The notes under the pieces: model-generated
Told to the model about the DNA's origin: nothing
Database searches by the model: none
The model's input: only the letters and a program-made list of their open reading frames with translations
Translations under genes and position numbers: made by a program
Assembly: GCF_003704095.1 (NCBI RefSeq)
Contig: NW_020844463.1
Coordinates: 124,001-188,000, forward strand
Direction: 5' to 3'
Origin: Pocillopora damicornis
Taxonomy: Eukaryota
DNA: 64,000 nucleotides
Shown here: piece after piece, positions 2,000-17,146 of the stretch
Layout: every line of letters starts with the position of its first letter
Position numbering within the stretch: position 1 is the stretch's first letter

Positions 2000-2190
2000 G
2001 CTCTCTTCTGTTTTAAAGCACTAAGGAAGCAGCTGTAAGTAGAGAAAACAATCGACAAGTCTCCTGTTTCTCTCCTACGATACTTTTCTGCTTTAGCTGC
2101 TTCCAGTGTGCATTATGATAGGACAGAACGCAGTCGTAGCTTCTTTCTTCGTTGACTTTAAATTTTAATTTCCAATTACAAAGCCCTTAC

Positions 2191-3099
2191 TGTGGTAGTT
2201 CGCCACAAATCCAGACCTTGAAACTGANNNNNNNNNNGTAAAAGTGACAAAAAGCTCGTGAGAAGAACTTGAAATTCTTTGTGGCAGCAAGTCTCCATCA
2301 TAGCGCCCGATCAGGGGAGAAGAAGAAGATGAGCCATCGTAAACAGTAACAGGATCATAACCTCGTTCAGTTTGAAAACGAGTAAAGGAAAGTTCCAGAC
2401 TTAGATTTGANNNNNNNNNNNNNNNNNNNNNNNNNNNNNNNNNNNNNNNNNNNNNNNNNNNNNNNNNNNNNNNNNNNNNNNNNNNNNNNNNNNNNNNNNN
2501 NNNNNNNNNNNNNNNNNNNNNNNNNNNNNNNNNNNNNNNNNNNNNNNNNNNNNNNNNNNNNNNNNNNNNNNNNNNNNNNNNNNNNNNNNNNNNNNNNNNN
2601 NNNNNNNNNNNNNNNNNNNNNNNNNNNNNNNNNNNNNNNNNNNNNNNNNNNNNNNNNNNNNNNNNNNNNNNNNNNNNNNNNNNNNNNNNNNNNNNNNNNN
2701 NNNNNNNNNNNNNNNNNNNNNNNNNNNNNNNNNNNNNNNNNNNNNNNNNNNNNNNNNNNNNNNNNNNNNNNNNNNNNNNNNNNNNNNNNNNNNNNNNNNN
2801 NNNNNNNNNNNNNNNNNNNNNNNNNNNNNNNNNNNNNNNNNNNNNNNNNNNNNNNNNNNNNNNNNNNNNNNNNNNNNNNNNNNNNNNNNNNNNNNNNNNN
2901 NNNNNNNNNNNNNNNNNGTACTCTGTGTCAAATTTCATGAAAAACAGTTCTATGTTTTCGTTGGCAGACAGGTTCCAGATGCAGTGCATGTTGTTTAGGT
3001 AGTTTCCAGTGTTGTTTGAGTATATCAGACCGGTTGTACTTGTTTCTATCTTCATGANNNNNNNNNNAGAACTTGTGGCTGTCACGGATGGTTGTTCAA
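2191..3099 (-). CDS. Paralog A CUB domains (two partial CUBs flanking a gap)
   Basis: [35 protein letters not shown] and [37 protein letters not shown]...SGFVANY. The ELxFxxFxTE motif appears twice, so there are at least two CUB units. Confidence 0.8.
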
Positions 3100-6000
3100 C
3101 TAGAATTAAAACAAAACGATAAATCAGTCACTCCAGAATTTCTTATTCAACCATCAATCAATTAATTTATTATATCCATTTTTAAATTTCTTGTGATCCT
3201 TGCAGTCTGATTAGCTTTCATCAATGCAATGTATTCACGAATGGTACCACTTTTTGCTCTAAATCGTATCATTTTCCCGGCCAATGAGGAAGCTTTATTA
3301 AAACACAATAACCATCATATTTCGAGACTTTTTTAAAAGTAACCAATCAAATTGCAGGAAAAGGAACAACTTTTACAACTTATAACAAATTAGCTCAATA
3401 CTGGAACATCAAAGCATTCGTAAAGACTACAAAAAAAGACTATTTGTCCGACTGAATTTAGCGATTTCAAAATGGATGTAATAAAATGATACTAAACTTC
3501 GTGTCGTGCAATTTTGGTCCGAATTCATACTCGTAATTTCAAATCACACGTATTAGACCAAATTACACTCCACTCAGTTCAATTTCTTTTATTAATCATT
3601 CAATCAAGTTATAAATATTTATTACCATAAAGATCAATACCACTATTTTTCATAACCAGCAAACCTACCCGCGCAGGACTGTTCACCGTCTCCTGTATAT
3701 CCAGGTTGGCAAATACAGTCATATGAGCCAATCACATTTACACATTGAGCAAACTCGTGGCAAGAGTAAGAACCCGTTTGACATTCATCCACATCTACAT
3801 TTGCTAACAACAAATAATGACAGCTTAAGTCAAATTAAGATTTTAATTGGTCAGTATTATGCTTTATCCATCAACGTGTCACTTGGCCCTCTGAGTAAGA
3901 TTGAAATGTATTCAGTTGTTCAGTTCTAATAATTATCATGATTATCTACAGAGACACGGATTTCTTAAGAAAACATGATGAAAAAAGAATAACAAATTAA
4001 CAAATAAATGGTTATGATATTAATTATAATGATATTGAAGGAAGATACGAACTTAACGCACAAGTACCGCCGCTAATTTAATATTCGGTAAGTTCGGTGC
4101 AAAGAAAGATTGCTTTTTTCTAAGATGATTATTCCCATTTCTGTTGATATTAGGAGACATAGATTGATCTGCTTCAAAGAAGTCACGAAAAGAAAACTTA
4201 AAAAGTGAAATATAGGAAGTCTGGCTATTCAAAATAGCCCAGTCTATATCAAACAGACATTTACTACAACGAGCTGCTTTATTCACGGCTTCCTATTTAC
4301 CCATGTTAATTACTACAGATTTCCAACCTGAAGAATTGCGCCAAGGATTGATATTTGTCACCTAGTTTTAAATGATCAATTAAACATCATAGTTGCCAGA
4401 AGAAGGATCTGCTAAGCCACTGATAATAGTTGTGTTTTGTTCAGCTTAGTTCAAAACTGAATGAAGTGTATTAGAAAGGATTTTGATTAGTGGTTATCGT
4501 ACTTGACGCATTACTTTGTTATGATTGTAAATAACCCACGTTGTTCTCAAATTGCTGCATTCCAACTAAGAGCAAAGAGCAGAACTCGAACCTTAAAAAT
4601 CTGACACACCTGTGCAGAAGTGTTTTCCGTCACCAACATAGCCAGCTTGACAGGTGCAGTGGTAGGATCCGATATCATTGACACAGTTCGCTTGTGCATG
4701 GCAGGTAAATGAGCCTGACAGACACTCATCAACATCTGTTTTAATATGAAATGAATCTCGGTCACGTCAGAGACATTCATTGATGTTGAGGAAATACGGC
4801 TTTGTGGATAAACAAATGTCAAACTGAGTGACTAGTCTCCAAATAGTCATGAAAAAAACCACATATCTCAATGTTATCATTACATACATACATACACACG
4901 TACGTACGTACATACATACATACATACATAAACTTTATTTAAACACAAATTTGAGTGTAGCTAAAAAAGGCTGAAACAAAGGTCAAACTAAGTGACAAGT
5001 CTCCTAATAGTCATGAAAAAAAAAACACGTATCTCAATGTTACAATGACATGCACACATGCATACATAAACTTTATTTAAATACAAATTTGAGTGTAGCT
5101 AAAAAAGCTAATGTCTTCGTGTTGCGTGTAATAGGTACAAATTCTAATAAGAATATAAAATTTACATGCCAATCAAATAAGACATTATTCAAGTATAAAA
5201 TAAAATAAAATTGTTATCATTGTTTTTTTTTTCCGGTACCTAAGCAATCGTGCATTCCGTTTCCAGTATAACCAGGGAGGCAGCTACAATCATAGGAACC
5301 ATCTGTATTCACGCACTCAGCTTGCGCATGACAGGAAAAAGACCCGGTCTGACACTCATTGACATCTGTTACATTTGTATATGTAAGCAAAAGGGATTAA
5401 GATTACTGAGCATGGTTGCAAACGCACTTTAACGAACGTCGATAATAATAGCTGACACCTCTCGTTTTGCCATGATTATAATTAATCTAAGGCAAATCTC
5501 TGAATCTTCAGTAGAAGTGTGACTACAATCCCTAGTTAAAAAACTATTGAGAGGAACTTGAAAAATGGTTTTCCATTAATTAGCCTAGAGACATTTTCTT
5601 AAACTGAAGGAAAAATCTCAGTTTCATTGTGGTTCAAATCTTAGGCCCGGCCCGTTTAGATCGAATAATGTGCCTCAGCGCTCTCTTAGAGCCGCAGAAT
5701 TTTCTTCCATGGGGATACTACAGTTATACGGGATGATTTATGATGACGGACGTCAGCAGTGAGTCGATAGCATGATCTGCTGTTTAAAAGTAGGATAACA
5801 AACGAGATTCCATTATCAATCAAGGAAAGCTTGAAAAAAGTAAGACTAGATGCAAAATCACAGAGACTTTTTATATACCTGGACATGTTTACAGGCCGGG
5901 GAATCACTGTGTACAGAGCACGTGCACGGCATCCTGATGACCAGTCACGTTGGAAAAATGTGGCTATGGACATTATTAAACTATTCATTTTACAGTCCAT

Positions 6001-9000
6001 ACTACCGTGAAAAACTAAAATTATGTGAAATTTAGGTGTGATTACCTGAGCAAGTGTACTGACCGTCTCCTTCATATCCATTGCGACATCTACAGTCATA
6101 GGAGCCATACACGTTAACACAGTCAGCTAACGCATGGCAGGAGTATGCTGCTGACTGACACTCATCCACATCTAGAAATATAAAGGTATATATTTAAAAA
6201 GGGCAAAAAAGTCATGCGAATAAAGAGCGATATCCCTTGATGTAAAACTGTGGGAGTGGGGCATCACTAAATGTTTCCTATTGTTGACGTTCATTCACAT
6301 ACCTGAACAAGAAGTGCTTCCATCTCCAGTGTAACCATTTAAGCACGTACAATCATAAGATCCTTGCAAATTCACACACTGGCCATGCGAATGACACGAA
6401 TATGACCCTGTTTCACATTCATCAACATCTGAAATAGAGGTAAAAGCGCTAAGATTTAAGGAAGGGGAACACAGACAAAACTTTTAATATATTTTGTGAA
6501 TTGAAATCAAAATAGCGAAATGTTTTGATACCGTTGAAATTCCTCAGTTCGGTGATTCACTTAGTTGAAATCAGTTAGTGACTGGGAATAACACACTTGA
6601 GGTATATGATGGTAGGTAGTTCATGACAAATGTGTTTTTGCATTTCAGGTTTTTTTTCCTGATTTTGTTAGAAACACCTCTGCACTATTAGCATGAAAAT
6701 GCCTACTCCACAAAAGTAAATATATTGCCTCTTGGATTCCGGTAAACGTTCACAAAATTTCAATTTGATGTTAACGCTACGGTAATTATAGGTGTTTTTT
6801 AATTGAATTTATAGGCTTTTACCTGAACATGAGAGCAGGCCATCTCCTTGGTATCCAGCCACACATGTACAAGCATAAGAACCATAAGCATTTACACATT
6901 GTGCACGTGGATGGCAAGAATATGATCCCGTCAGGCACTCGTCGACATCTGTTGACATTCATGCATAAGACTTGATTCCAGAATTGCCTTGCAAATTGCG
7001 CCAAGCTCTTATTTTTTTGTTGATTTTGAGACAATTTGTACACGCTTGGAACAAAATTTATGACAGCCCCCTCGGACTCGCCCCAATTCCACCCAACTAC
7101 CTTCATAATTCTAAAAGCACCTGAGAAAGCCCTGAATAACTCTATTTATAACTTGATGAGACTAGATAAGGGGATATCCCTCGGGGAATTTTAACTGCCC
7201 ACATGCAGCGAAAAAAAAAGCAACAATAACTGAATAAAAACAGTGGTAGAAGCAAGATTGCAAACCTATTTCATTTTTTTTTTGTTTGCTTCCTTTTTGT
7301 TTATGGAACTGTGGGGTTCTTTTTATTATTATAAATTTTCATAATTGACACATGAGCATTTTCCTCTAGAGAATCTTGGCGAAAAGAGAAAGAGATGGCA
7401 AAAGAGAGAGATAAGGACATATATCTGTATCCACACTGGTACTATATACCTGAGCAAGCATGGCGACCATCTCCTGCATACCCGGGCAAACATCTGCAAT
7501 CATAGGAGCCTACAACGTTCACACACAGACCTTGCGCATGACAGACATAAGAGCCAGACTGACACTCGTCGACATCTGTTAGATATTCATATTTAAAGTT
7601 CGTCAGAAAATAACACACATTTTCCATTGTATGCAATTTAGCGCAGGACCACAGGATATAAGTTCAGCTTCAGATGGTTTCGAATTTTATATTACGGTTT
7701 AGCATGGTAGCTTGTCAACCATCTTGTTTCTCACGAGGAAAAAATTTATTTTCAGTTTATACCTTAACGAGTAGAGTCTTAGCACAGGCTCTCTTCGAGG
7801 GTTTTGCGTTTAAAAAATAGCGCGCTCCTTAAAGAATGCATGTGATTCCATGATATCTTCATATGGCACCAGGAAGGAGTTATGAGCTAACTGACTCGTC
7901 ATAGAATTCACAGAAAAGTCAAAACAATTATTTAGGTTCAATGATTGAATTAATTTGGTCAAGTATACGTACCTGAACAAATGTGAAATTCGTTCTCTGA
8001 ATAACCTGGCAAGCATTGACAGTGGTACGAACCAATCACATTGACGCAGTGGGATTGCAAATCACATGAATATGACCCTGACAGACACTCGTCAACGTCT
8101 TTCCAAAAAAGAGGAATAATAATAATTCGTTACATGTCACTCCCAAGAAGAAAATCTATGCGACAGAATCACACACGGAGTATGAAGAATGGTGATATTC
8201 AAACCTTGACACGAATGGTAGCCATCTCCATTATATCCCGCTGAACATCTACATTCGAAGGAGCCAGGCACGTTAACACAGTCAGCTTGCGCATGACATG
8301 AGTATGAGCCTGACGAACATTCATCTTCGTCTATAGGAAAAGTATATAAATCATTGAAAAGATAAATGAATGCAAAAATGAATATTTAAAAATAGCTATA
8401 AGGTAAATGTGGAATCCATGGAGCTATTAATTTGGGCCCCAGAAATGGCTGCACACAACTTTTGAATACTGGAATTTGTTAAGGAGTTTTCTCGACACGT
8501 CTGCCATCCGGCTTCTTCTTGGAATAAAAGACCTTACAAGAAAAGTCATAATTGCACACCGCCTAATGAAACCTATTATACCGTTTTCATTGTTTTTCCT
8601 CATTCCTTTGCTTTTCACCCTCTATTTTTTAAAGTCAACTGTGATTTCTTCACCAAGAAAGAGCGCGTTAACAAAAATATAAAGTGTCCATCTTTTATTT
8701 AATTGATGCCCAAAGCATGACCTGGCGAACAAACCTTCACAGACGTCTCCACTCAGGCGGTAGCCAACAGGGCATTCACAGGAATAAGATCCATAATTGT
8801 TGACACAATACGCATGCACTGGACAATAATCTGGAAAGTCCCTACACTCGTCATAGTCTAAAATAAAACAACGGAAATCAAATAAACACTAAAAACAACA
8901 GAAGAAGAAAATACATCGAACGCGAACGAAGCACATATATATTACCATGTGGTATTGATTAATCGAAAAGTTGTTGCAGTGCAAAACACACCAGAGCACT

Positions 9001-12000
9001 TCAAGAACTACAAAAACGCAAGGTTAGACAATGCAGGGCTGGTGGAAATAGATTCCACCTGCTGGACTTCTCTTTTAGTGATCAATCTTCCCTTTTTCGA
9101 AACTCTTTCACCTGGGATATCAGGGAAAGTAAGAAACAGAAGCGCAAAAGCGTAAAGGCGCAGAAACAACCTACAATCTGGCTGCATTAATACGGAGCCA
9201 AATGCAGCCAAGAACTATTTGTTGCAATGCTTTATAGACCTGGACTGAAACTAATCGAACGTAAGCACAGCACAGACGAAAGGAATAAAGAAAGTCACAC
9301 CTTTCTTGCATGTAAACCCATAACAATCTAAGCAATTTACATCGTTCCATTGGAACTTATGGAGAAAGCCAAGAGCATGAACACAGTCCTGGTTGTGAAT
9401 ATTATTCGGTTGGCCGTCAGCCCAGTGATGGAAATCTAGAGCAGTTCGATCGCTCCACACGAATGAACCTTCGTCGTTGATGTCCGAAAGGCCCAACCAC
9501 GAATGACGACTGCCATGTAGACTTTGCACAAACACATTTTCCTCATGGCTGTGGATACTTGGGAGATTGGCTGCTAACGAAGCGCATGTTCTTTGGCTAT
9601 CACTCCAAGAATCGCAAGAGGAGACTTTCCGGTAGCAATACCCATTGTTATAGATCCAGTCATCTTCGCAAATGTCTTTGAGCAAAAAAAATCATAAAAT
9701 CATAAACAGAGGTTACGAGAAAGTTTGTTGAAAAATGATGATTACATTTATCATAAAATAAAATAAAATGTCTTAAAGAAATCTTACCAGACTCGAATCT
9801 ACATATTATAATGAGATGCAAACATTCTTAATGCGCATTGTTGTGGTTCTCGGTCAAGAACAGGAGCCGTAAGAACACACAAGTTTATTACAAAGCACAC
9901 AGAACAGAACTTAGGAAACTTAATCACACCACCAGTGAATAATTATTATTAGGTGCCCATTTTCCTATACAGTGGCTTAGCTACTAGTAATGTGGTAACC
10001 GTTGGCCGTAATATTGGTAATATCACGACACGGATGATTAAACAAAGACACTCCGGTATCACCTTCGATATGCAACGGGAGTAAGCAGCAAATTATAAAT
10101 TTTTAACCTTTATTTAACGTTATTGTCAATATCTATTGGTGTAGTTTTGTTCTTTAGTAGAAACTACCGAGAATGTCTGTAAATCCAATTAATTTTCCAT
10201 TAGAAGAAATGAAATTACTTACTAGTTTAACTAACCAAAAACCTCGCAAGTAAATAAAGAAGTCATATCTGGGAAACGCTAAATCATGCTGACAAGTTGG
10301 CGTCAATATTGTTTTATTTGACGCGGATAACTTGCTTTTATGGGGAAAACTTCCATCGAGGCGAAACCACCAGTAGCCAAAAGTACATCAAAATGCAAGA
10401 ATTAAACTATGATAATAAATTCAATTACCTGTCAACACAGCATATGATACAACCAGTGGATCAAAGCCTTGAACAAACAGTTCCTTAACACAAACTCGTA
10501 TGCTTGACTCGGTAATGAACTGTATTACAGAAAAGACACGTTAAGAAATGGATGCTGAGAGGATTCTGAACGTCGCGAAAAATGTTCACGTTGTACAGCA
10601 AAGGCAAGGCGCGTGTTAAAAGAAACTACACTGGGTTGAAAAGGATTGAAAAGGTCACTTGATAAAACCAAATTATTTTGTTCATTCTTAACCTAATCTA
10701 ATACGAAACATCCCTTTCAGTAACTCACATATTTCACTCTTTTATTTGGTGCCATATGAAAATTTGACTCTTTCATTCTTTACTTTCGTATTTGCTTCAC
10801 CTTGTCACTTCTCAGATTTGTTGCCTGCGTCGTTACCGCTTTCCGTCTTCAAGTAGTTTTGGTTCAGTATTTCAACTTTTCTTTTTTACGATATATTTTG
10901 CAAAAAGCATTAGTAAGACAAGAAGACCCCGTACGTTAGAGACTATACTCAGTAAAAAGCCCTGGTTTCTATGGAAAGCTTTTTTCTTCGTTGTTTTCTT
11001 TTACCTATAGGTATGCACGATGAGAAACGGGGTTCTACAAGGATATCTCTGAGTGGAGCACAACTGAAAGCTTCGAAATGAAAAACAGTGTCATTTTTGC
11101 CTCGCGTATCTTTCCAGGGAGAATTGCGGTGATCACTCCGTTCCCTTGACTAGGAAAATCAAATGAAACGGCGGTCACACTTGCAAGCAAGTGTTATTTT
11201 AATACCTCAATCCAGTTAGCAATTCCATTGCATTCTGCGGCAGTGTCTCCTACATTTCTGGGGTGTGTTGCTGTAATCAAAACAGTCGGTGGTTTACTAT
11301 AGTTTTTAATAAGGGTTGCCTCCTGTTGATCAAAAAATCCTTTCAGGACACATTCGTTTAAAACGTACAAAGTAGGTGTGAAGTAAGTTCAATTTTTTTA
11401 GATTTTATCGTCAGCTTACGGATTTTAGCCACAAATTTGTTGCAAAAATATGATCAAAAACTGCACACATAAACATGGTGGCAAAAGCCTCTTTTTTCCT
11501 GCCTGGTAGTTATGGTTTTAGCCCCTCCCCCCCCCCCCCCCCTTAAAAAAAGGTTAGTCTCTATGATTTATCAAACCGCGTCACTAGAGTTAAAAATGAT
11601 GGGTGGGAAGGAGGGTAAAGGAGGCTCAGTAAGCCAATGATTCCTTGCCAATGTAGGTTGAGTTAGTGCCCTTTTAAGCTCTGAAGATCAGAGATTGTTG
11701 GGCTCTTCAATTCCTCCGAAGGTACAGCCACATTAGGCTTGAAAATTTTTCAGTCCGTTTGCTACTAACCTTAATTGCGGGAGATCCCCGCGGTATATAA
11801 CACTGACCTCAAAAACTTTATTAGTTATGAAAATACTTTACCATTCATATGCGTCTTATTTTTACCTGACAAAAAGCGAAGTTGTGATCTGCCGATGGTA
11901 AACCGCCATTGGGGAAGGTTATACTGCCGTGCTCCTTAAAAAATGGCTTAGGGCAATGCTGAAAGACTAGCCAATGCTGCGAAGGAGTAGTACAAATATG

Positions 12001-15000
12001 AACCTGATGTGCACCTTTTAGCAACATAAAAATGTCTTAATGCAGGACACGAAATGTCCTCTTTTTTTTGGCGTAATTTGAGCAGTTAGCTGGTTGTTTT
12101 GGTAGAGTTTGGTTTGGTTAAGTGAAAATCATCCTCTTATGCGAAAGGGCAGTGATGAAATGAAACATGTTAGCATGAATAACTCAGTCAAAACGTCCGG
12201 TACAAGAGCAAACCGCCTTCGAACGTGTGATATTGACTACTATTCGTCAAGAAGAGTTTCTAAATTTTCACATACTCAATTCTTTCCCCGCTTCCACGTG
12301 GATGTAAAACAAAAACAACGTTCAAATAGCTTTTATATAGTTTACCACTGAGATATCATCGTGAACTCCAGCAAAGTTTTGAAGCTCCGTGAGGCAAATC
12401 CTGAAAAAGCTAGTTGAAACATCTTCAAGCCAAACACTTGCAGCATCGTGCATTAATCCTGACCTGTAATGCTGAGCTGTTACAAGAACCGTTGGTGGAT
12501 CAGAATATTCTTCCTATTAAGAGTTGGAAAGAAATGTAAAGTTTTATTCTCAAGATAAGATATTTGAATGACATCGTAATCAGATAGCATTTTCACCCCT
12601 CGCTTTTAAAGCACGAATTTGAGATCCGCAGGCGTTACACAGCTCCGCTCTGGACACTCACCGCAGGAAGAGTGACTCTTTGACAAGTAGTTCTAGTCCA
12701 CCATCTGGAGAACTTCTCTTCTCCCGTTATTCCACCAGGCGGGGCACCTTGATAAGCAATCCAATCTACTGTAGCGAAACTGTTCGACGGATTGTCATTC
12801 CTACCAGCGCGAGTAACACAGGCTGTAAACTGGGTGGTATTTAAGTTCTCAACCCAAGATATAGTGGCTTCGTGAACAAACGTGTTATTAGAATAATTAA
12901 AGTGGTTAACGGTGAGTTGAATGTATATTTTGCTGTGGGGGTAAAACACAAATTGCTCAAATTTGATAATGTCACATTGATCTTCTGCCCAGGAAGGAAC
13001 ATTTTGGAACTGGTGCCTTCCTTTCTGGTACGGAAAACCTGCAATGAAACATAAAACACAACTAGCGCCTTTAAAAATTAAGATGGTTAGGGGTATTGTT
13101 TGTTTAAATCAATACTTAAGGTATTCTTGACGGGTGGATGCTCTCGCATTTCTCTTATCTACCAAATTATGCCTGCAGTGAAAACAATGCTACTTCGTAA
13201 ATGTATGTGTGTCTGCGTGTTTGTATCTTTGTCTATATTACTTTTCGTCTGCCTGTCTTTAAGCCTTTACGCTTGATGGAAACTGTGGATGAAACAGTAA
13301 TCAAACTTTAAAAGGTTGAAGCTTATTTATTTGAGATACCTGTGCAGCTCCCGGGATGATAGACAGTATAATTCGCTTTTGTTTCACATATCTCTTTTTT
13401 CAGCGTGCATAGATTCCTGAACGTCCGGCCATTAGAAGCACAGACTTGTTCTTCGTACGGTGGGCAGCTGCTGTTACAAACGCATGTAAATTGATGCGAT
13501 GACAGGGGAACACAGTGCGCGAAGTAGTCGCAGCTCTTATTTGTGCACGGGTTAATATCTACAAAAGTAAAAAAAAGCAGAACTTTTTAGCTTAGCAAGA
13601 ACAGCGTCCGCAGCGAGTACCTGAAGGTCAGAAATTCTCGAGAGCACAATGTTAATGTACTGCACAATCGGCAATGGTAAATTATTTATCTCAAAATGCA
13701 GCATTTGTGAAATTCTCTTAGAAATACCTCCTAAAGCCAAGTAGTTTACAGTAATGTTGTTTCTCTGAACGTTAAAGCCCGAGTCATCTTTGGTGCACAC
13801 TCGAAAGTGATGGTTGGTAACTTCCTTGAATGGGACAAAATATGAAAAGGTCACAATTTCATTTATTTAACGAATTATTTTGAATCCAATTGAGATAAAT
13901 AGAGCATGAAAGTAATGAAAACAAATTTTCTAGAGAAATAGTTAACAGGCGCAAAAAAATAAGAAGAAAAGAACCTTCTTGCTCAGAGAGATTACCTTGA
14001 CATTATTCTATAAAGGCAACTTTACCTCTAACCAAACAATAATCGATTTTCTCATCGAGCACATGCTGTTGTCGTCGCTTCTCTGACGCTCATTACCACA
14101 AGCAGTTGAGAGTACAACTGGTGGTGTGTAAAACGAAGTCGGAAAGCGCTCAATCTGAAAGATACAAGCAGTAGCAAACTCTTCGTTGCTTTGATTTGAA
14201 AGGTTGCCAATACAGGGAAGAAACGAAGAAAAAGCCAGATAAATGAATAGGAAACTTAACTCGCATTGATGGATAAAACAGACGAAAATATCAGTATAAA
14301 CTAGAAATGTGATGTTTTTTAAAGCCACCTCATCTCCTTATTGAAAAAATTAAGACAAAAACAGTTTAATTTATAGAAGAGCAATAAAAAAACTTAATTT
14401 GGCAAGAATACCTTGCACAGCGCGTAGTTTGTTTCTTCAGTCGGTACTTCATCCTCAAAAAACATGACTTGTGCTGACAGTTTTTCTCGCCATGACGACG
14501 GGTGATTATATTCATATGCCATCCAGTTCTAGCCAATGAGGTTAAAAATATAAGCGTCACAAAAACTTGGCTGATATCCAATATTCATTTAGATATAGGA
14601 TAATAATCGTGATAATAATCGAATAATTTTGATAATGATGACGACGATGATGATGATGATGATTTTTTTCATCATTATATTAATAATTATTAAAAAAATA
14701 ACGAGAAGGGTAATGATAAGGACACACGAATAACCCAAGTCGTAATTAGCAAAATACATGTTGCTACATTATTATGTTTAAAATAGGCTAAGAACATATT
14801 GCTCACCACCGTTAAGTTTCTATGAAGTCCTTCGAATTTCCTTGATTCCTTTAAACAGACTTCAAATTGACTCGTGGATATGCTTTCTAACCACACAATT
14901 GTTGCGTCTTTCCTTTGGTTTGGAGTATTATGAATAGCTGTCACGTGAACTTGGGGCACCAATGAAAATGCCTATATGAGGTAAATCGCATAAACATTAA

Positions 15001-17146
15001 ATTTTTTTCAAGGGAGGAAAAAAAGTCCTGTACTGAACTGTTTTTGCTTTTCTTCACCTTGTGACTGGTCTATAAAGATTGCGTCAGCTATTCGACTACC
15101 CAATAATCGCAACTTACCCCAGCGCGTTTACCCACGCCCCAAGGGGGTTGTGTTTTTAATTCAGTTACAGAAAGCTTTCATTATAACCCATACATTTCTA
15201 TCTATTTGTAATGCGCACTCAAATTTGTCCTCTGACTACAACATGGTTTATTTTGCTTGATCTCCCAATAGTTTTTATTATAATCCTTCAATTGTTTTTG
15301 CTTTTGCGCCGTTGGTCTCGACGCATCACGTCCCCAAGGGAAAGCTCATATCTCACAATTTTCCACGAGCTTTGCTCCTGGAAAATTGTTCGCATCTCAG
15401 AACAGGTAATGCCCACGTACAAACACCCGATCATATTTTCGCCCCAAGTGGAGGCTATTGATCACATATTATTATTCCAAGGTGGAGAGAGGTATCACGA
15501 GAGTAAAGATCTCGCCTGAAGTAACGCCACGTTCGCCCTTTTGTGGGAAATGATTGTGCTCTATTGGCTGGACAGCGTCAGGCATCTCGGTAACTAGTAT
15601 GCTCTATGTTTCATAGTCAAGTTGAACCAAAATACTGCAAACTGTTTTGAATTCATTTACTAGCTTACAACAACTAATACAACTAGAACGGCAGTATTTC
15701 AATCGAGTACGGTCGCAGAGTAAAATGTTCTCCGTACCAATACTGTTACCTCAACATTTCAATTTAGAATTTTAATATCTAATGTTATACTTTACCCGGG
15801 GAAATGTAACCAGGTTGCATTTTTTCTCCGTAGTAAATGGATCGATGCCAGTTTCACCATGATAAACTCCAGCCTGATGGCCCTGGAATGCAAACCAATC
15901 GATAGTCGTATTTCCCCCATAATCTTGACCACCTTGTACTAAGCAAGCCTTGAAATGGGTTGTCGTCACGTCTTCCACCCAAATAAACGCAAAATCGTGA
16001 ACGATGGATGAACTGTGGCCGTGGTTAGCAGTAACGAACACTCGAATAGGCATATGACCGGAGAATCTGCTACTAAATGGCACATATTGGCAATGAAAAC
16101 CATTTTCTCCGACCTGATGCATTTCAATTTTGCCCCTTTCGACTCCTAACCAATCAAAATTGAATTCAAAATCAAACAAGTAAATAAATAGATGAAGACA
16201 TGAAGTAAGTATTGATCATGATTGTTGTCAAATTCCATTTAGAAAATAGATGTTTCTTTTCCTGGCTTTAAATCTTAGACAGGGCCACAATGGTTTCCTT
16301 TCGGGTTACCCTTCAATTTAGTTAAGTGCCGGAGATCTTAAAACTTCCCTACGCTTTGCCTGGGCCGGTCAGATTTTTTGTTTGACCTTAGCTAACACAG
16401 GCGAGCGGAAAAGAGCGTCTCGCGCTGTTTTCAGTGCCAGGAAATTACATATTTCACAGGATTTATCGGACCATGTTGTGTCTGAGTATGTAATAATAAC
16501 AAAACAAAACCGGATTAAAGGCACAGGCGCAAGGTTTATTATTATAATATCCTAACAAATTCGTGCATCGATTTCTGATTGAATTTGCATTCCATATTGA
16601 TCTTCGTTATTATGTTAAAAGTGTATTCCGATGTTTTCACAATTGACTGAATAATAGATGACTTCCTCTCCGTCTATAAGGAAAGAGGGCAATCCCGCGG
16701 GGAAAGAGGTCATTTTTATCAAGACAATTACAAATAGAGCTTTTTTTAGGTTATTCGCAGTGATATACATATTCGTACAGCTTTCTTTTATTATATTTTT
16801 TTTGTTAATTTGTTTATTTATTTTTAAATTTTAAAGTTTTCAAAGAAAAATTTTGCCGATGTGAAATTTTAAAGTATGCCGCTCGATCGGGAAATAAAAA
16901 GAAAAATGAGCATAGTCCAAGAAAACGGTATATTTTGAAGAGGCGATTTCCGTACCCTTAATTTCCGTGCGCGCTATTTCAATCTGTTTTCAACTCATTC
17001 TTAGGAGAGGATTTCGACAGCTAAGGATGTTCTCTAAAAATTCAAGCAAATAAAATCACTTAAGAAAGCTATGTACCTCCAGAGTCTTCGATGATGAGAC
17101 AGCAGTAAACCAAAAGGAATACGCCTCTCTTTGTTAAGAAGGACAT
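2191..17146 (-). CDS. Paralog A: multi-exon lectin/scavenger-receptor-like protein (signal peptide, 3x H-lectin-like, follistatin/Kazal, 3x H-lectin-like, C-type lectin, 10x EGF-Ca, at least 2 CUB); 3' end lost in gaps
   Basis: Exons with AG/GT ends and consistent phase: 17146-17077, 16145-15796, 14971-14807, 14528-14412, 14154-14026, 13824-13728, 13558-13340, 13038-12662, 12513-12346, 11976-11866, 11322-11206, 10519-10429, 9675-9301, 8857-8735, 8330-8205, 8098-7973, 7575-7450, 6948-6823, 6428-6303, 6171-6046, 5365-5240, 4735-4610, 3794-3669, 3099-gap, gap-2191. No in-frame stops seen. Confidence 0.88.
3669..8857 (-). CDS. Paralog A: ten Ca-binding EGF exons (one of 123 nt, nine of 126 nt; all phase 1-1)
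   Basis: Each starts with D[VEY]DEC or a close variant and has six Cys plus the CxNxxGS[YF]xCxC motif, e.g. [42 protein letters not shown]. Confidence 0.92.
4820..5110. repeat. Intronic tandem duplication of about 160 bp containing (TACA)n
   Basis: caaactragtgac..agtctcc.aatagtcatgaaaaaaa...atctcaatgtta...tacataaactttatttaaa.acaaatttgagtgtagctaaaaaag occurs twice. Confidence 0.8.
9301..9675 (-). CDS. Paralog A C-type lectin domain exon
   Basis: CEDDW..NGYCY...SWLGLSD...FVWSD...WADGQPNN...DCV...WNDVNC...FTCKK. Confidence 0.93.
10429..13038 (-). CDS. Paralog A second triplet of H-type-lectin-like domains (5 exons)
   Basis: Three units of about 95 aa with pattern C-x2-[VI]-x-F...P-x-V-x-[VI]T-x2-H...W-[LIV]-E...F-x2-C...V-x-[WY]. 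The exons are well supported; the fold assignment is inferred. Confidence 0.75.
13340..13558 (-). CDS. Paralog A follistatin (FOLN + Kazal) exon
   Basis: Ten Cys: [13 protein letters not shown]...[34 protein letters not shown]...HPGSC. Confidence 0.9.
13728..16145 (-). CDS. Paralog A first triplet of H-type-lectin-like domains (5 exons)
   Basis: e.g. CNLVTFPR|[55 protein letters not shown]|NWMAY. Confidence 0.75.
17077..17146 (-). CDS. Paralog A exon 1 (signal peptide)
   Basis: ATG at 17146: [23 protein letters not shown] then G|gtacat. Phase 1 matches exon 2. Confidence 0.8.

Follow-up and report, generated by a model that had tools for sequence, protein, structure and literature searches.

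H-type lectins are described as trimers in which the ligand pocket lies between adjoining protomers. According to published accounts, Helix pomatia agglutinin (HPA) consists of two homotrimers bridged by three disulfides, with its sites on top of each trimer, and the ligands reported across the family vary from N-acetylgalactosamine (GalNAc) to galactosides and methylated rhamnose. LePin, a secreted lectin of Xenia, a soft coral, binds algae and aids their uptake (10.1101/2022.12.13.520278). The same preprint gives H_lectin, Kazal, CLECT and EGF domains for LePin-like proteins of symbiotic anthozoans and describes Nematostella relatives without the C-lectin and EGF parts (10.1101/2022.12.13.520278), and a 2026 Palythoa preprint agrees on the LePin-like domain set. 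Here we analyse a minus-strand gene in a 64,000-nucleotide stretch of the Pocillopora damicornis genome (assembly GCF_003704095.1, contig NW_020844463.1, positions 124,001 to 188,000; hereafter the window), whose region 10429-16145 encodes two groups of three lectin-like units, termed triplets, on either side of a Kazal spacer.

With H_lectin, Kazal, C-type lectin and EGF domains and a signal-peptide-like exon all found, the window gene is by its domain composition a member of the published anthozoan LePin-like family. Like Xenia LePin, it would place a signal peptide and these four domain types in one secreted chain of a kind that is spread over symbiotic anthozoans; unlike LePin, this hexacoral paralogue has a long EGF array followed by one more tail, and lies in a tandem array. 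The likeness to HPA (2ccv), SLL-2 (3wmp) and discoidin I (2w94) concerns the single unit, of about 95-100 amino acids, with a beta-sandwich (predicted for the window family) and assignment of homologues to PF09458. Those lectins, however, are homotrimers or hexamers of identical chains, whereas in the window three different units are fused and the triplet occurs twice. The gene is thus an ordinary member of a large annotated family, and what is new is the architectural reading.

We propose, with a probability of roughly 0.7, that this region codes for the N-terminal recognition head of a LePin-like gene that is expressed, in which each triplet would be folded as a built-in hetero-'trimer'. The predicted order of parts is signal peptide, triplet 1, follistatin-type Kazal domain, triplet 2, C-type lectin domain, EGF repeats and tail. 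Each triplet would form a compact body, its three non-identical units taking the places of the identical chains of HPA, SLL-2 or discoidin. Because the H-type lectin pocket lies between adjoining protomers, there could be up to three different inter-unit pockets per triplet and up to six per head, beside one C-type lectin site. By analogy with Xenia LePin, the head probably serves to bind glycans or other molecules on the surface of algae or microbes, and the EGF stalk and tail would connect such binding with the cell surface or with partners further on.

If the head does consist of two pseudo-trimers with position-specific pockets, it would be the first H-type lectin with an obligatory trimer written into one chain and with three different sites rather than three identical ones. 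The residues to mutate, the phase-1-bounded fragments and the up to three sites per triplet would all be defined, which would give a testable picture of how LePin-type proteins might recognise symbionts or microbes. To our knowledge, LePin is so far the sole lectin with knock-down evidence for algal uptake by a coral. The accessible text of the LePin preprint makes no mention of six units, triplets or a pseudo-trimer (10.1101/2022.12.13.520278). A fused pseudo-trimer reading of H-type lectins was not found in the running text of the open-access papers searched. On multiple or tandem H-type lectin domains the LePin preprint was the only paper found, and its Extended Data Fig. 1 may draw several H_lectin boxes.

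Gene model and expression of the lectin head

The window is eukaryotic and intron-rich, with a GC content of about 0.38 and four runs of N, all below position 3067 (1900-1999, 2228-2237, 2411-2917 and 3058-3067). Exons were called from stop-free stretches in the three minus frames combined with inspection of splice sites, and single exons were used in database searches. Eleven exons (A-K) on the minus strand, with an AG acceptor and a GT donor at each border, make up the triplet-to-triplet part; the gene as a whole extends from the signal-peptide exon to beyond 2189, so that 10429-16145 covers only this part. Its features are as follows.

17077-17146, minus strand: exon 1, coding portion; Met at 17146, then a hydrophobic stretch like a signal peptide (read from the sequence), phase-1 end
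15796-16145, minus strand: exon A (350 nucleotides), triplet 1; whole of unit 1 and first third of unit 2, phase-1 start
14807-14971, minus strand: exon B (165 nucleotides), triplet 1; core of unit 2
14412-14528, minus strand: exon C (117 nucleotides), triplet 1; final strand of unit 2, then the beginning of unit 3
14026-14154, minus strand: exon D (129 nucleotides), triplet 1; middle of unit 3
13728-13824, minus strand: exon E (97 nucleotides), triplet 1; end of unit 3, phase-1 end; RNA joints 13558/13728 and 13823(+1)/14025
13340-13558, minus strand: exon F (219 nucleotides), spacer; follistatin-type (FS) Kazal domain, phase 1 to phase 1
12662-13038, minus strand: exon G (377 nucleotides), triplet 2; whole of unit 4 and first third of unit 5, phase-1 start
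12346-12513, minus strand: exon H (168 nucleotides), triplet 2; core of unit 5
11866-11976, minus strand: exon I (111 nucleotides), triplet 2; final strand of unit 5, then the beginning of unit 6
11206-11322, minus strand: exon J (117 nucleotides), triplet 2; middle of unit 6
10429-10519, minus strand: exon K (91 nucleotides), triplet 2; end of unit 6, phase-1 end; RNA joint 10519/11206
9301-9675, minus strand: C-type lectin exon (375 nucleotides), phase 1 to phase 1; QPN...WND motif
2189-8861, minus strand: downstream exons of the same gene, placed by tblastn with the stored proteins P0007 and P0180; borders approximate, interrupted by N runs

The gene of the triplet-Kazal-triplet head is expressed and is spliced as modelled. 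All ten introns were found as joints in each of four poly-A RNA runs from two studies, with CT..AC on the plus strand corresponding to GT..AG on the minus strand, and in three of the runs the introns were carried on single contigs of 5,313-5,342 letters. Eight poly-A RNA runs contained 0.30-0.37 of the sampled words of 10300-16250, a range that brackets the exon share of this interval (1,941 of 5,951 bases, or 0.33). At the upstream end, the RNA contigs' overhang past 16147 reads into the exon at 17077-17146 in four of four runs; this signal-peptide-like exon lies about 930 bases upstream of 10429-16145 and is joined to exon A by the RNA contigs. At the other end, the loose end before 10429 reads into the C-type lectin exon and sets its start, and the donor of that exon (9300/9299) was placed from sequence alone. 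A run of calcium-binding EGF-like exons follows from about 8861 to 4620, and then, to about 2189, matches to the part of P0180 beyond its EGF repeats. RNA contigs of low depth (2-4) were also seen in or across introns H/I and G/F, at 12003-12331 and 13012-13353; they resemble unspliced precursor or DNA carry-over.

These results bear out the layout that an earlier interpretation, made from the letters of the window (the sequence-only reading), had put forward. The exon sizes it gave for the two triplets (350/165/117/129/97 and 377/168/111/117/91 nucleotides) match exactly on the minus strand and agree with the RNA joints. Exon borders and joints likewise confirm that introns fall within domains and that phase 1 is confined to the triplet ends: where A begins, at the E/F and F/G junctions, and where K ends. 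Intra-triplet introns, four in each triplet and eight in total, are all of phase 0 and lie inside units 2 and 3 (or 5 and 6), none of them at a unit border. An alternative candidate for exon K at 11100-11190 is out of frame with exon J and was rejected in favour of 10429-10519.

H-type lectin units and the triplet as duplicated module

Exon translations and the unit alignment of relatives confirm that six units of about 95 amino acids stand in two groups of three around the follistatin/Kazal spacer. Among 92 six-unit proteins the units share the pattern C..F..P.V..T..H..DA..W.E..F..C..V.W.A, and each carries two conserved Cys residues. In the exon translations of the window gene the core of this pattern is present in all six units, with unit 3 lacking the usual His before the 'DA' region. 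Assignment of the units to a family rests on relatives. The Pfam H_lectin family PF09458 has a cut-off of 24 bits, and 10 of 10 multi-unit homologues scanned exceeded it (28.4-78 bits), although under Pfam's own thresholds just one or two H_lectin stretches were detected per homologue. For P0180, P0167 and P0190, which are the nearest relatives, PF09458 is also precomputed. Pfam scans of single exons were too weak to be used for placing units.

Structure prediction led to the same family. An AlphaFold2 model was built for P0009 of Exaiptasia (triplet 1, the Kazal domain and a 28-residue disordered tail; 393 amino acids, 120-row alignment), here called model 1. Structural alignment with VIA-align placed its unit 2 on discoidin I (2w94_A; Z 5.1, root-mean-square deviation (rmsd) 2.6, 83 residues aligned) and on HPA (2ccv_A; Z 5.0, rmsd 2.8, 83 of 99 residues), and its unit 1 on SLL-2 (3wmp_A; Z 4.6, 90 of 94 residues). 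The beta-sandwich fold of these three lectins is thus found in the model of a relative, with modest Z values (4.6-5.1). Taken together, the Pfam matches of the homologues and the model support the view that the six units are H-type lectin domains, a resemblance that had been claimed from the sequence pattern. A phmmer search of P0009 against PDB returned Kazal/FS chains only and no H-type lectin; Foldseek with model 1 placed FS/Kazal chains first (FSTL1, E 3.8e-4), with no H-type lectins among the matches listed. Unit 2 of model 1 also resembles C-terminal domains of phage tailspikes (4ru4_A, the best at Z 6.3, 4y9v_A and 4ru5_A) and R-type pyocin fibres (6cxb_A and 6cl6_A), proteins that we take to be homotrimers.

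The family is large. With exon A as the query, phmmer found 237 proteins at E<=0.001 in the full protein library, and the 805-amino-acid P0001 found 140 at E<=1e-10. Among the 120 matches listed, all named ones are anthozoan (Oculina, Pocillopora, Stylophora, Acropora, Montipora, Porites, Orbicella, Actinia, Actinostola and Nematostella) and combine H_lectin, Kazal, Lectin_C and EGF; tails in the P0001 family vary between fibrinogen C, D8C, TLD, CUB, SRCR, collagen C and F5/8-C. Nearest to the window gene among the stored proteins are P0180 and P0167 from Oculina, with 64-66% identity in exon A and 77-78% in exon G; P0180, for which the CUB and SRCR families are listed, reaches 66% and 78%, respectively. 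Two further proteins are of note for what they lack: P0015 from Nematostella has six units and no C-type lectin domain, and P0019 has six units without the Kazal domain. For LePin-like proteins the preprint applies a filter of homology to 60% or more of Xenia LePin, and by eye the antigen peptides of LePin carry the N-Y-A-x-C motif of units 3/6 (10.1101/2022.12.13.520278).

Within the head, the triplet rather than the single domain emerges as the duplicated module, as the sequence-only reading had held; unit tree, class consensus and intron placement agree on this. The six units of P0001, each of about 90-100 amino acids, align over their full length and pair by position (U1/U4, U2/U5 and U3/U6). 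A tree built from the units of 33 six-unit and 9 three-unit proteins, 225 in all, contains bipartitions that unite, without intruders, 64 of 66 units for U1+U4 (support 0.75), 64 of 66 for U2+U5 (0.87) and 64 of 66 for U3+U6 (0.60), and no bipartition among its 225 tips splits triplet 1 from triplet 2. Each class has its own consensus among the 92 six-unit proteins: G.G..N with W.A[FY]Q in U1/U4, RE..FDG.H after the second Cys in U2/U5, and N.AFC and K[DE]L...DP in U3/U6. Intron positions differ among the three units of a triplet and are identical between both triplets, a pattern that would agree with triplication first, followed by intron gain and then by duplication of the triplet.

Unit counts follow the same module. 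In 263 stored proteins that contain one or more units, a set collected by similarity to this family and with fragments included, three units (28 proteins) and six units (93) outnumber two (12) and four (10). Stand-alone three-unit proteins of 259-329 amino acids comprise P0083, from the bacterium Enhygromyxa salina (a marine myxobacterium), P0042, P0057, P0061 and P0128 (metagenome); judged from these sequences, fused triplets also occur outside the anthozoans. Kinship by position between the stand-alone triplets and U1-U6 is weak and saturated, with the first units leaning to U1/U4 and the rest clustering together. P0120 is no more than a fragment of triplet 2 of this family.

The spacer is a Kazal domain of the follistatin type. 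Exon F matches Kazal_2 with E 8.5e-11, and in a sequence search with a relative the best solved matches were agrin (E 8e-13), FSTL1 (E 8.1e-07) and the FS domains of follistatin. It is alike by sequence and fold to the FS Kazal modules of agrin, FSTL1, follistatin and SPARC; in the window, by contrast, one such module is wedged between two lectin triplets. Read by eye, the presumed inhibitor P1 position of the Kazal exon is Pro in the window and Ser in the family consensus. The Pro makes protease inhibition by the window domain doubtful, and the spacer may have a structural role instead of inhibiting proteases.

Predicted packing, binding sites and other explanations

The prediction for model 1 is confident, with a mean predicted local distance difference test (pLDDT) of 87.1 and a predicted template-modelling score (pTM) of 0.82, which supports triplet 1 and the Kazal domain as one confidently placed body rather than loose beads. 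Seven of the 50 VIA-align matches listed for model 1 are alignments of the whole triplet (about residues 3-294). They comprise herpesvirus dUTPase-type proteins (7byf_C, Z 6.3; 2we1_A, Z 5.4; 8zwq_A, Z 5.0), a single-chain C1q head (5hzf_A, Z 4.0), a Cbln1 C1q trimer construct (5kca_A, Z 3.9), a single-chain adiponectin trimer (4dou_A, Z 3.3) and PCSK9's C-terminal domain (7anq_A, Z 2.9). For three of the seven the entry titles name a single chain or a trimer, and dUTPase-type proteins and the PCSK9 C-terminal domain are, we assume, sandwich modules set round a pseudo-three-fold axis. Like the predicted triplet, the PCSK9, dUTPase-type and engineered C1q/adiponectin heads thus have three sandwich modules of one chain round a (pseudo) three-fold axis; unlike it, they belong to unrelated folds and families and match with low Z, so that the likeness is in arrangement only. 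The whole-triplet matches support a three-fold-like arrangement, short of proof. The class-specific conserved loops argue for selection on each of the six units, and for three pockets per triplet that would not be alike.

Several points weigh against the proposed trimer-like head. The whole-triplet matches combine low Z (2.9-6.3) with high rmsd (4.2-6.3 Å), and their Z lies below the tool's own level for what is possibly 'only a common arrangement'. AlphaFold is perhaps prone to over-pack repeated domains. The models are of relatives rather than of the window protein, and P0001 and P0009 are 33-39% identical to window exon A. When unit-coding pieces of the window were scanned singly, exon A (16.2 bits, E 0.012) and exon H (14.4 bits, E 0.043) matched PF09458 below the cut-off, and six of the eight pieces scanned gave no Pfam H_lectin match, exons I and K being outside the scan. 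A profile of nine stand-alone triplets searched against PDB had HPA and HAA as its first matches at E 0.45-0.5, which is not significant. In its alignment with HPA (E 0.45), Arg63 of HPA stands opposite the Ala of the conserved 'DA'. The accessible text of the LePin preprint does not name the alga-binding domain (10.1101/2022.12.13.520278). In the minor pilin CofB, an H-type lectin trimer holds a CofJ peptide in the expected sugar pocket and does not bind GalNAc (PMC6048534).

How far the pockets would resemble known sugar sites can be read from the same profile alignment. The GalNAc contacts of HPA are, we take it, Asp26, Arg63, Trp83/His84 and Tyr89; in discoidin, the reported contact residues are W235/Y241. 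With Ala opposite Arg63, an HPA-type GalNAc pocket is not evident in the units: this GalNAc-contact residue of HPA does not align with the units of the window family, and the Trp83/His84 region falls opposite non-aromatic consensus positions. The contact residues of HPA were, then, not recovered, a weak negative given that the alignment is not significant. The sequence-only reading had foreseen a pseudo-trimer with three non-identical sites; a single predicted body and three unit types are supported, and sugar binding by the sites is a conjecture.

This outcome bears on the possibility that the triplets keep the H-type lectin architecture with a repurposed fold, and bind protein or peptide, or else do no more than hold the C-type lectin domain on a rigid base. 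The Ala opposite Arg63 would fit such a role, and CofB, a bacterial homotrimer with a peptide-binding pocket, is a precedent for H-type lectin pockets without sugar. The C-type lectin domain could, moreover, bear sugar binding alone. Its exon matches Lectin_C with E 3.4e-18, the corresponding domain of a relative matches ASGPR at Z 19.8, and at the usual calcium and sugar site it carries QPN...WND, presumably an uncommon variant of the EPN/QPD motifs. Conservation of position-specific loops after the second Cys, such as RE..FDG.H in U2/U5, argues for functional sites, however; the residue mapping onto HPA is uncertain with an alignment that is not significant; and known H-type lectins themselves differ in their ligands. 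We consider a repurposed fold unlikely, though worth keeping in view.

A second alternative concerns the relation between the triplets, which might be stacked on a common axis and clamped by the Kazal domain; the sequence-only reading had already seen in the two triplets a mimic of the hexamer formed by HPA. Model 2, of P0178 from Pocillopora verrucosa (815 amino acids, from the signal peptide to the C-type lectin domain; 118 rows), has a mean pLDDT of 83.0 and a pTM of 0.68. This is above expectation for freely jointed modules and hints at some fixed relation between triplets 1 and 2, and the joining of two HPA homotrimers by three disulfide bridges offers a pattern for stacking. A pTM of 0.68 fits any other fixed side-by-side arrangement equally, however, and the 73-amino-acid domain between the triplets is set against the direct contact of the HPA trimers. 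Among the VIA-align matches listed for model 2, C-type lectin chains took up the places (ASGPR, Z 19.8), with no signal for triplet 2 or stacking. A pseudo-hexamer of this kind is, in our judgement, unlikely.

That the units are instead independent, each forming trimers across chains in the manner of HPA to give cross-linked multimers, is improbable: every solved H-type lectin matched is a homo-oligomer built of single-domain chains or domains, and the one or two stretches that Pfam finds per homologue mean that the units are quite divergent, but the pTM of triplet 1 with the Kazal domain is not expected of independent domains, the units abut without spacer sequence in the unit alignment, they are conserved by position and not interchangeable, and counts of three and six dominate among the 263 proteins.

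If, as we propose, the triplets are built-in trimers, fusion may have let the three inter-unit pockets diverge, and the tandem family, with at least 46 exon-A-like matches and varied tails, might form a combinatorial repertoire for telling symbiont strains and microbes apart. We put this forward tentatively, with the odds somewhat against it.

Paralogues and minor features

Searches of the window revealed at least two further paralogues of the same part order (triplet, Kazal, triplet, C-type lectin, EGF), both on the minus strand, at about 33784-23381 and about 60811-55371, and a further C-type lectin match, also on the minus strand, at about 46274-45441. The studied gene and its neighbouring paralogues together make up a tandem array. 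Across the genome, the 46 exon-A-like matches at E<=0.001 are grouped on a few contigs. One public protein, P0006 (175 amino acids), shares 98% identity with exon A before running on into translated intron, apparently a mis-prediction in which the donor of exon A was read through. Simple repeats occur in two introns of the gene: intron B/C contains a (GAT)n-plus-T-run repeat at 14626-14702, which the RNA read analysis passed over, and intron J/K a run of about 19 C at 11527-11545.

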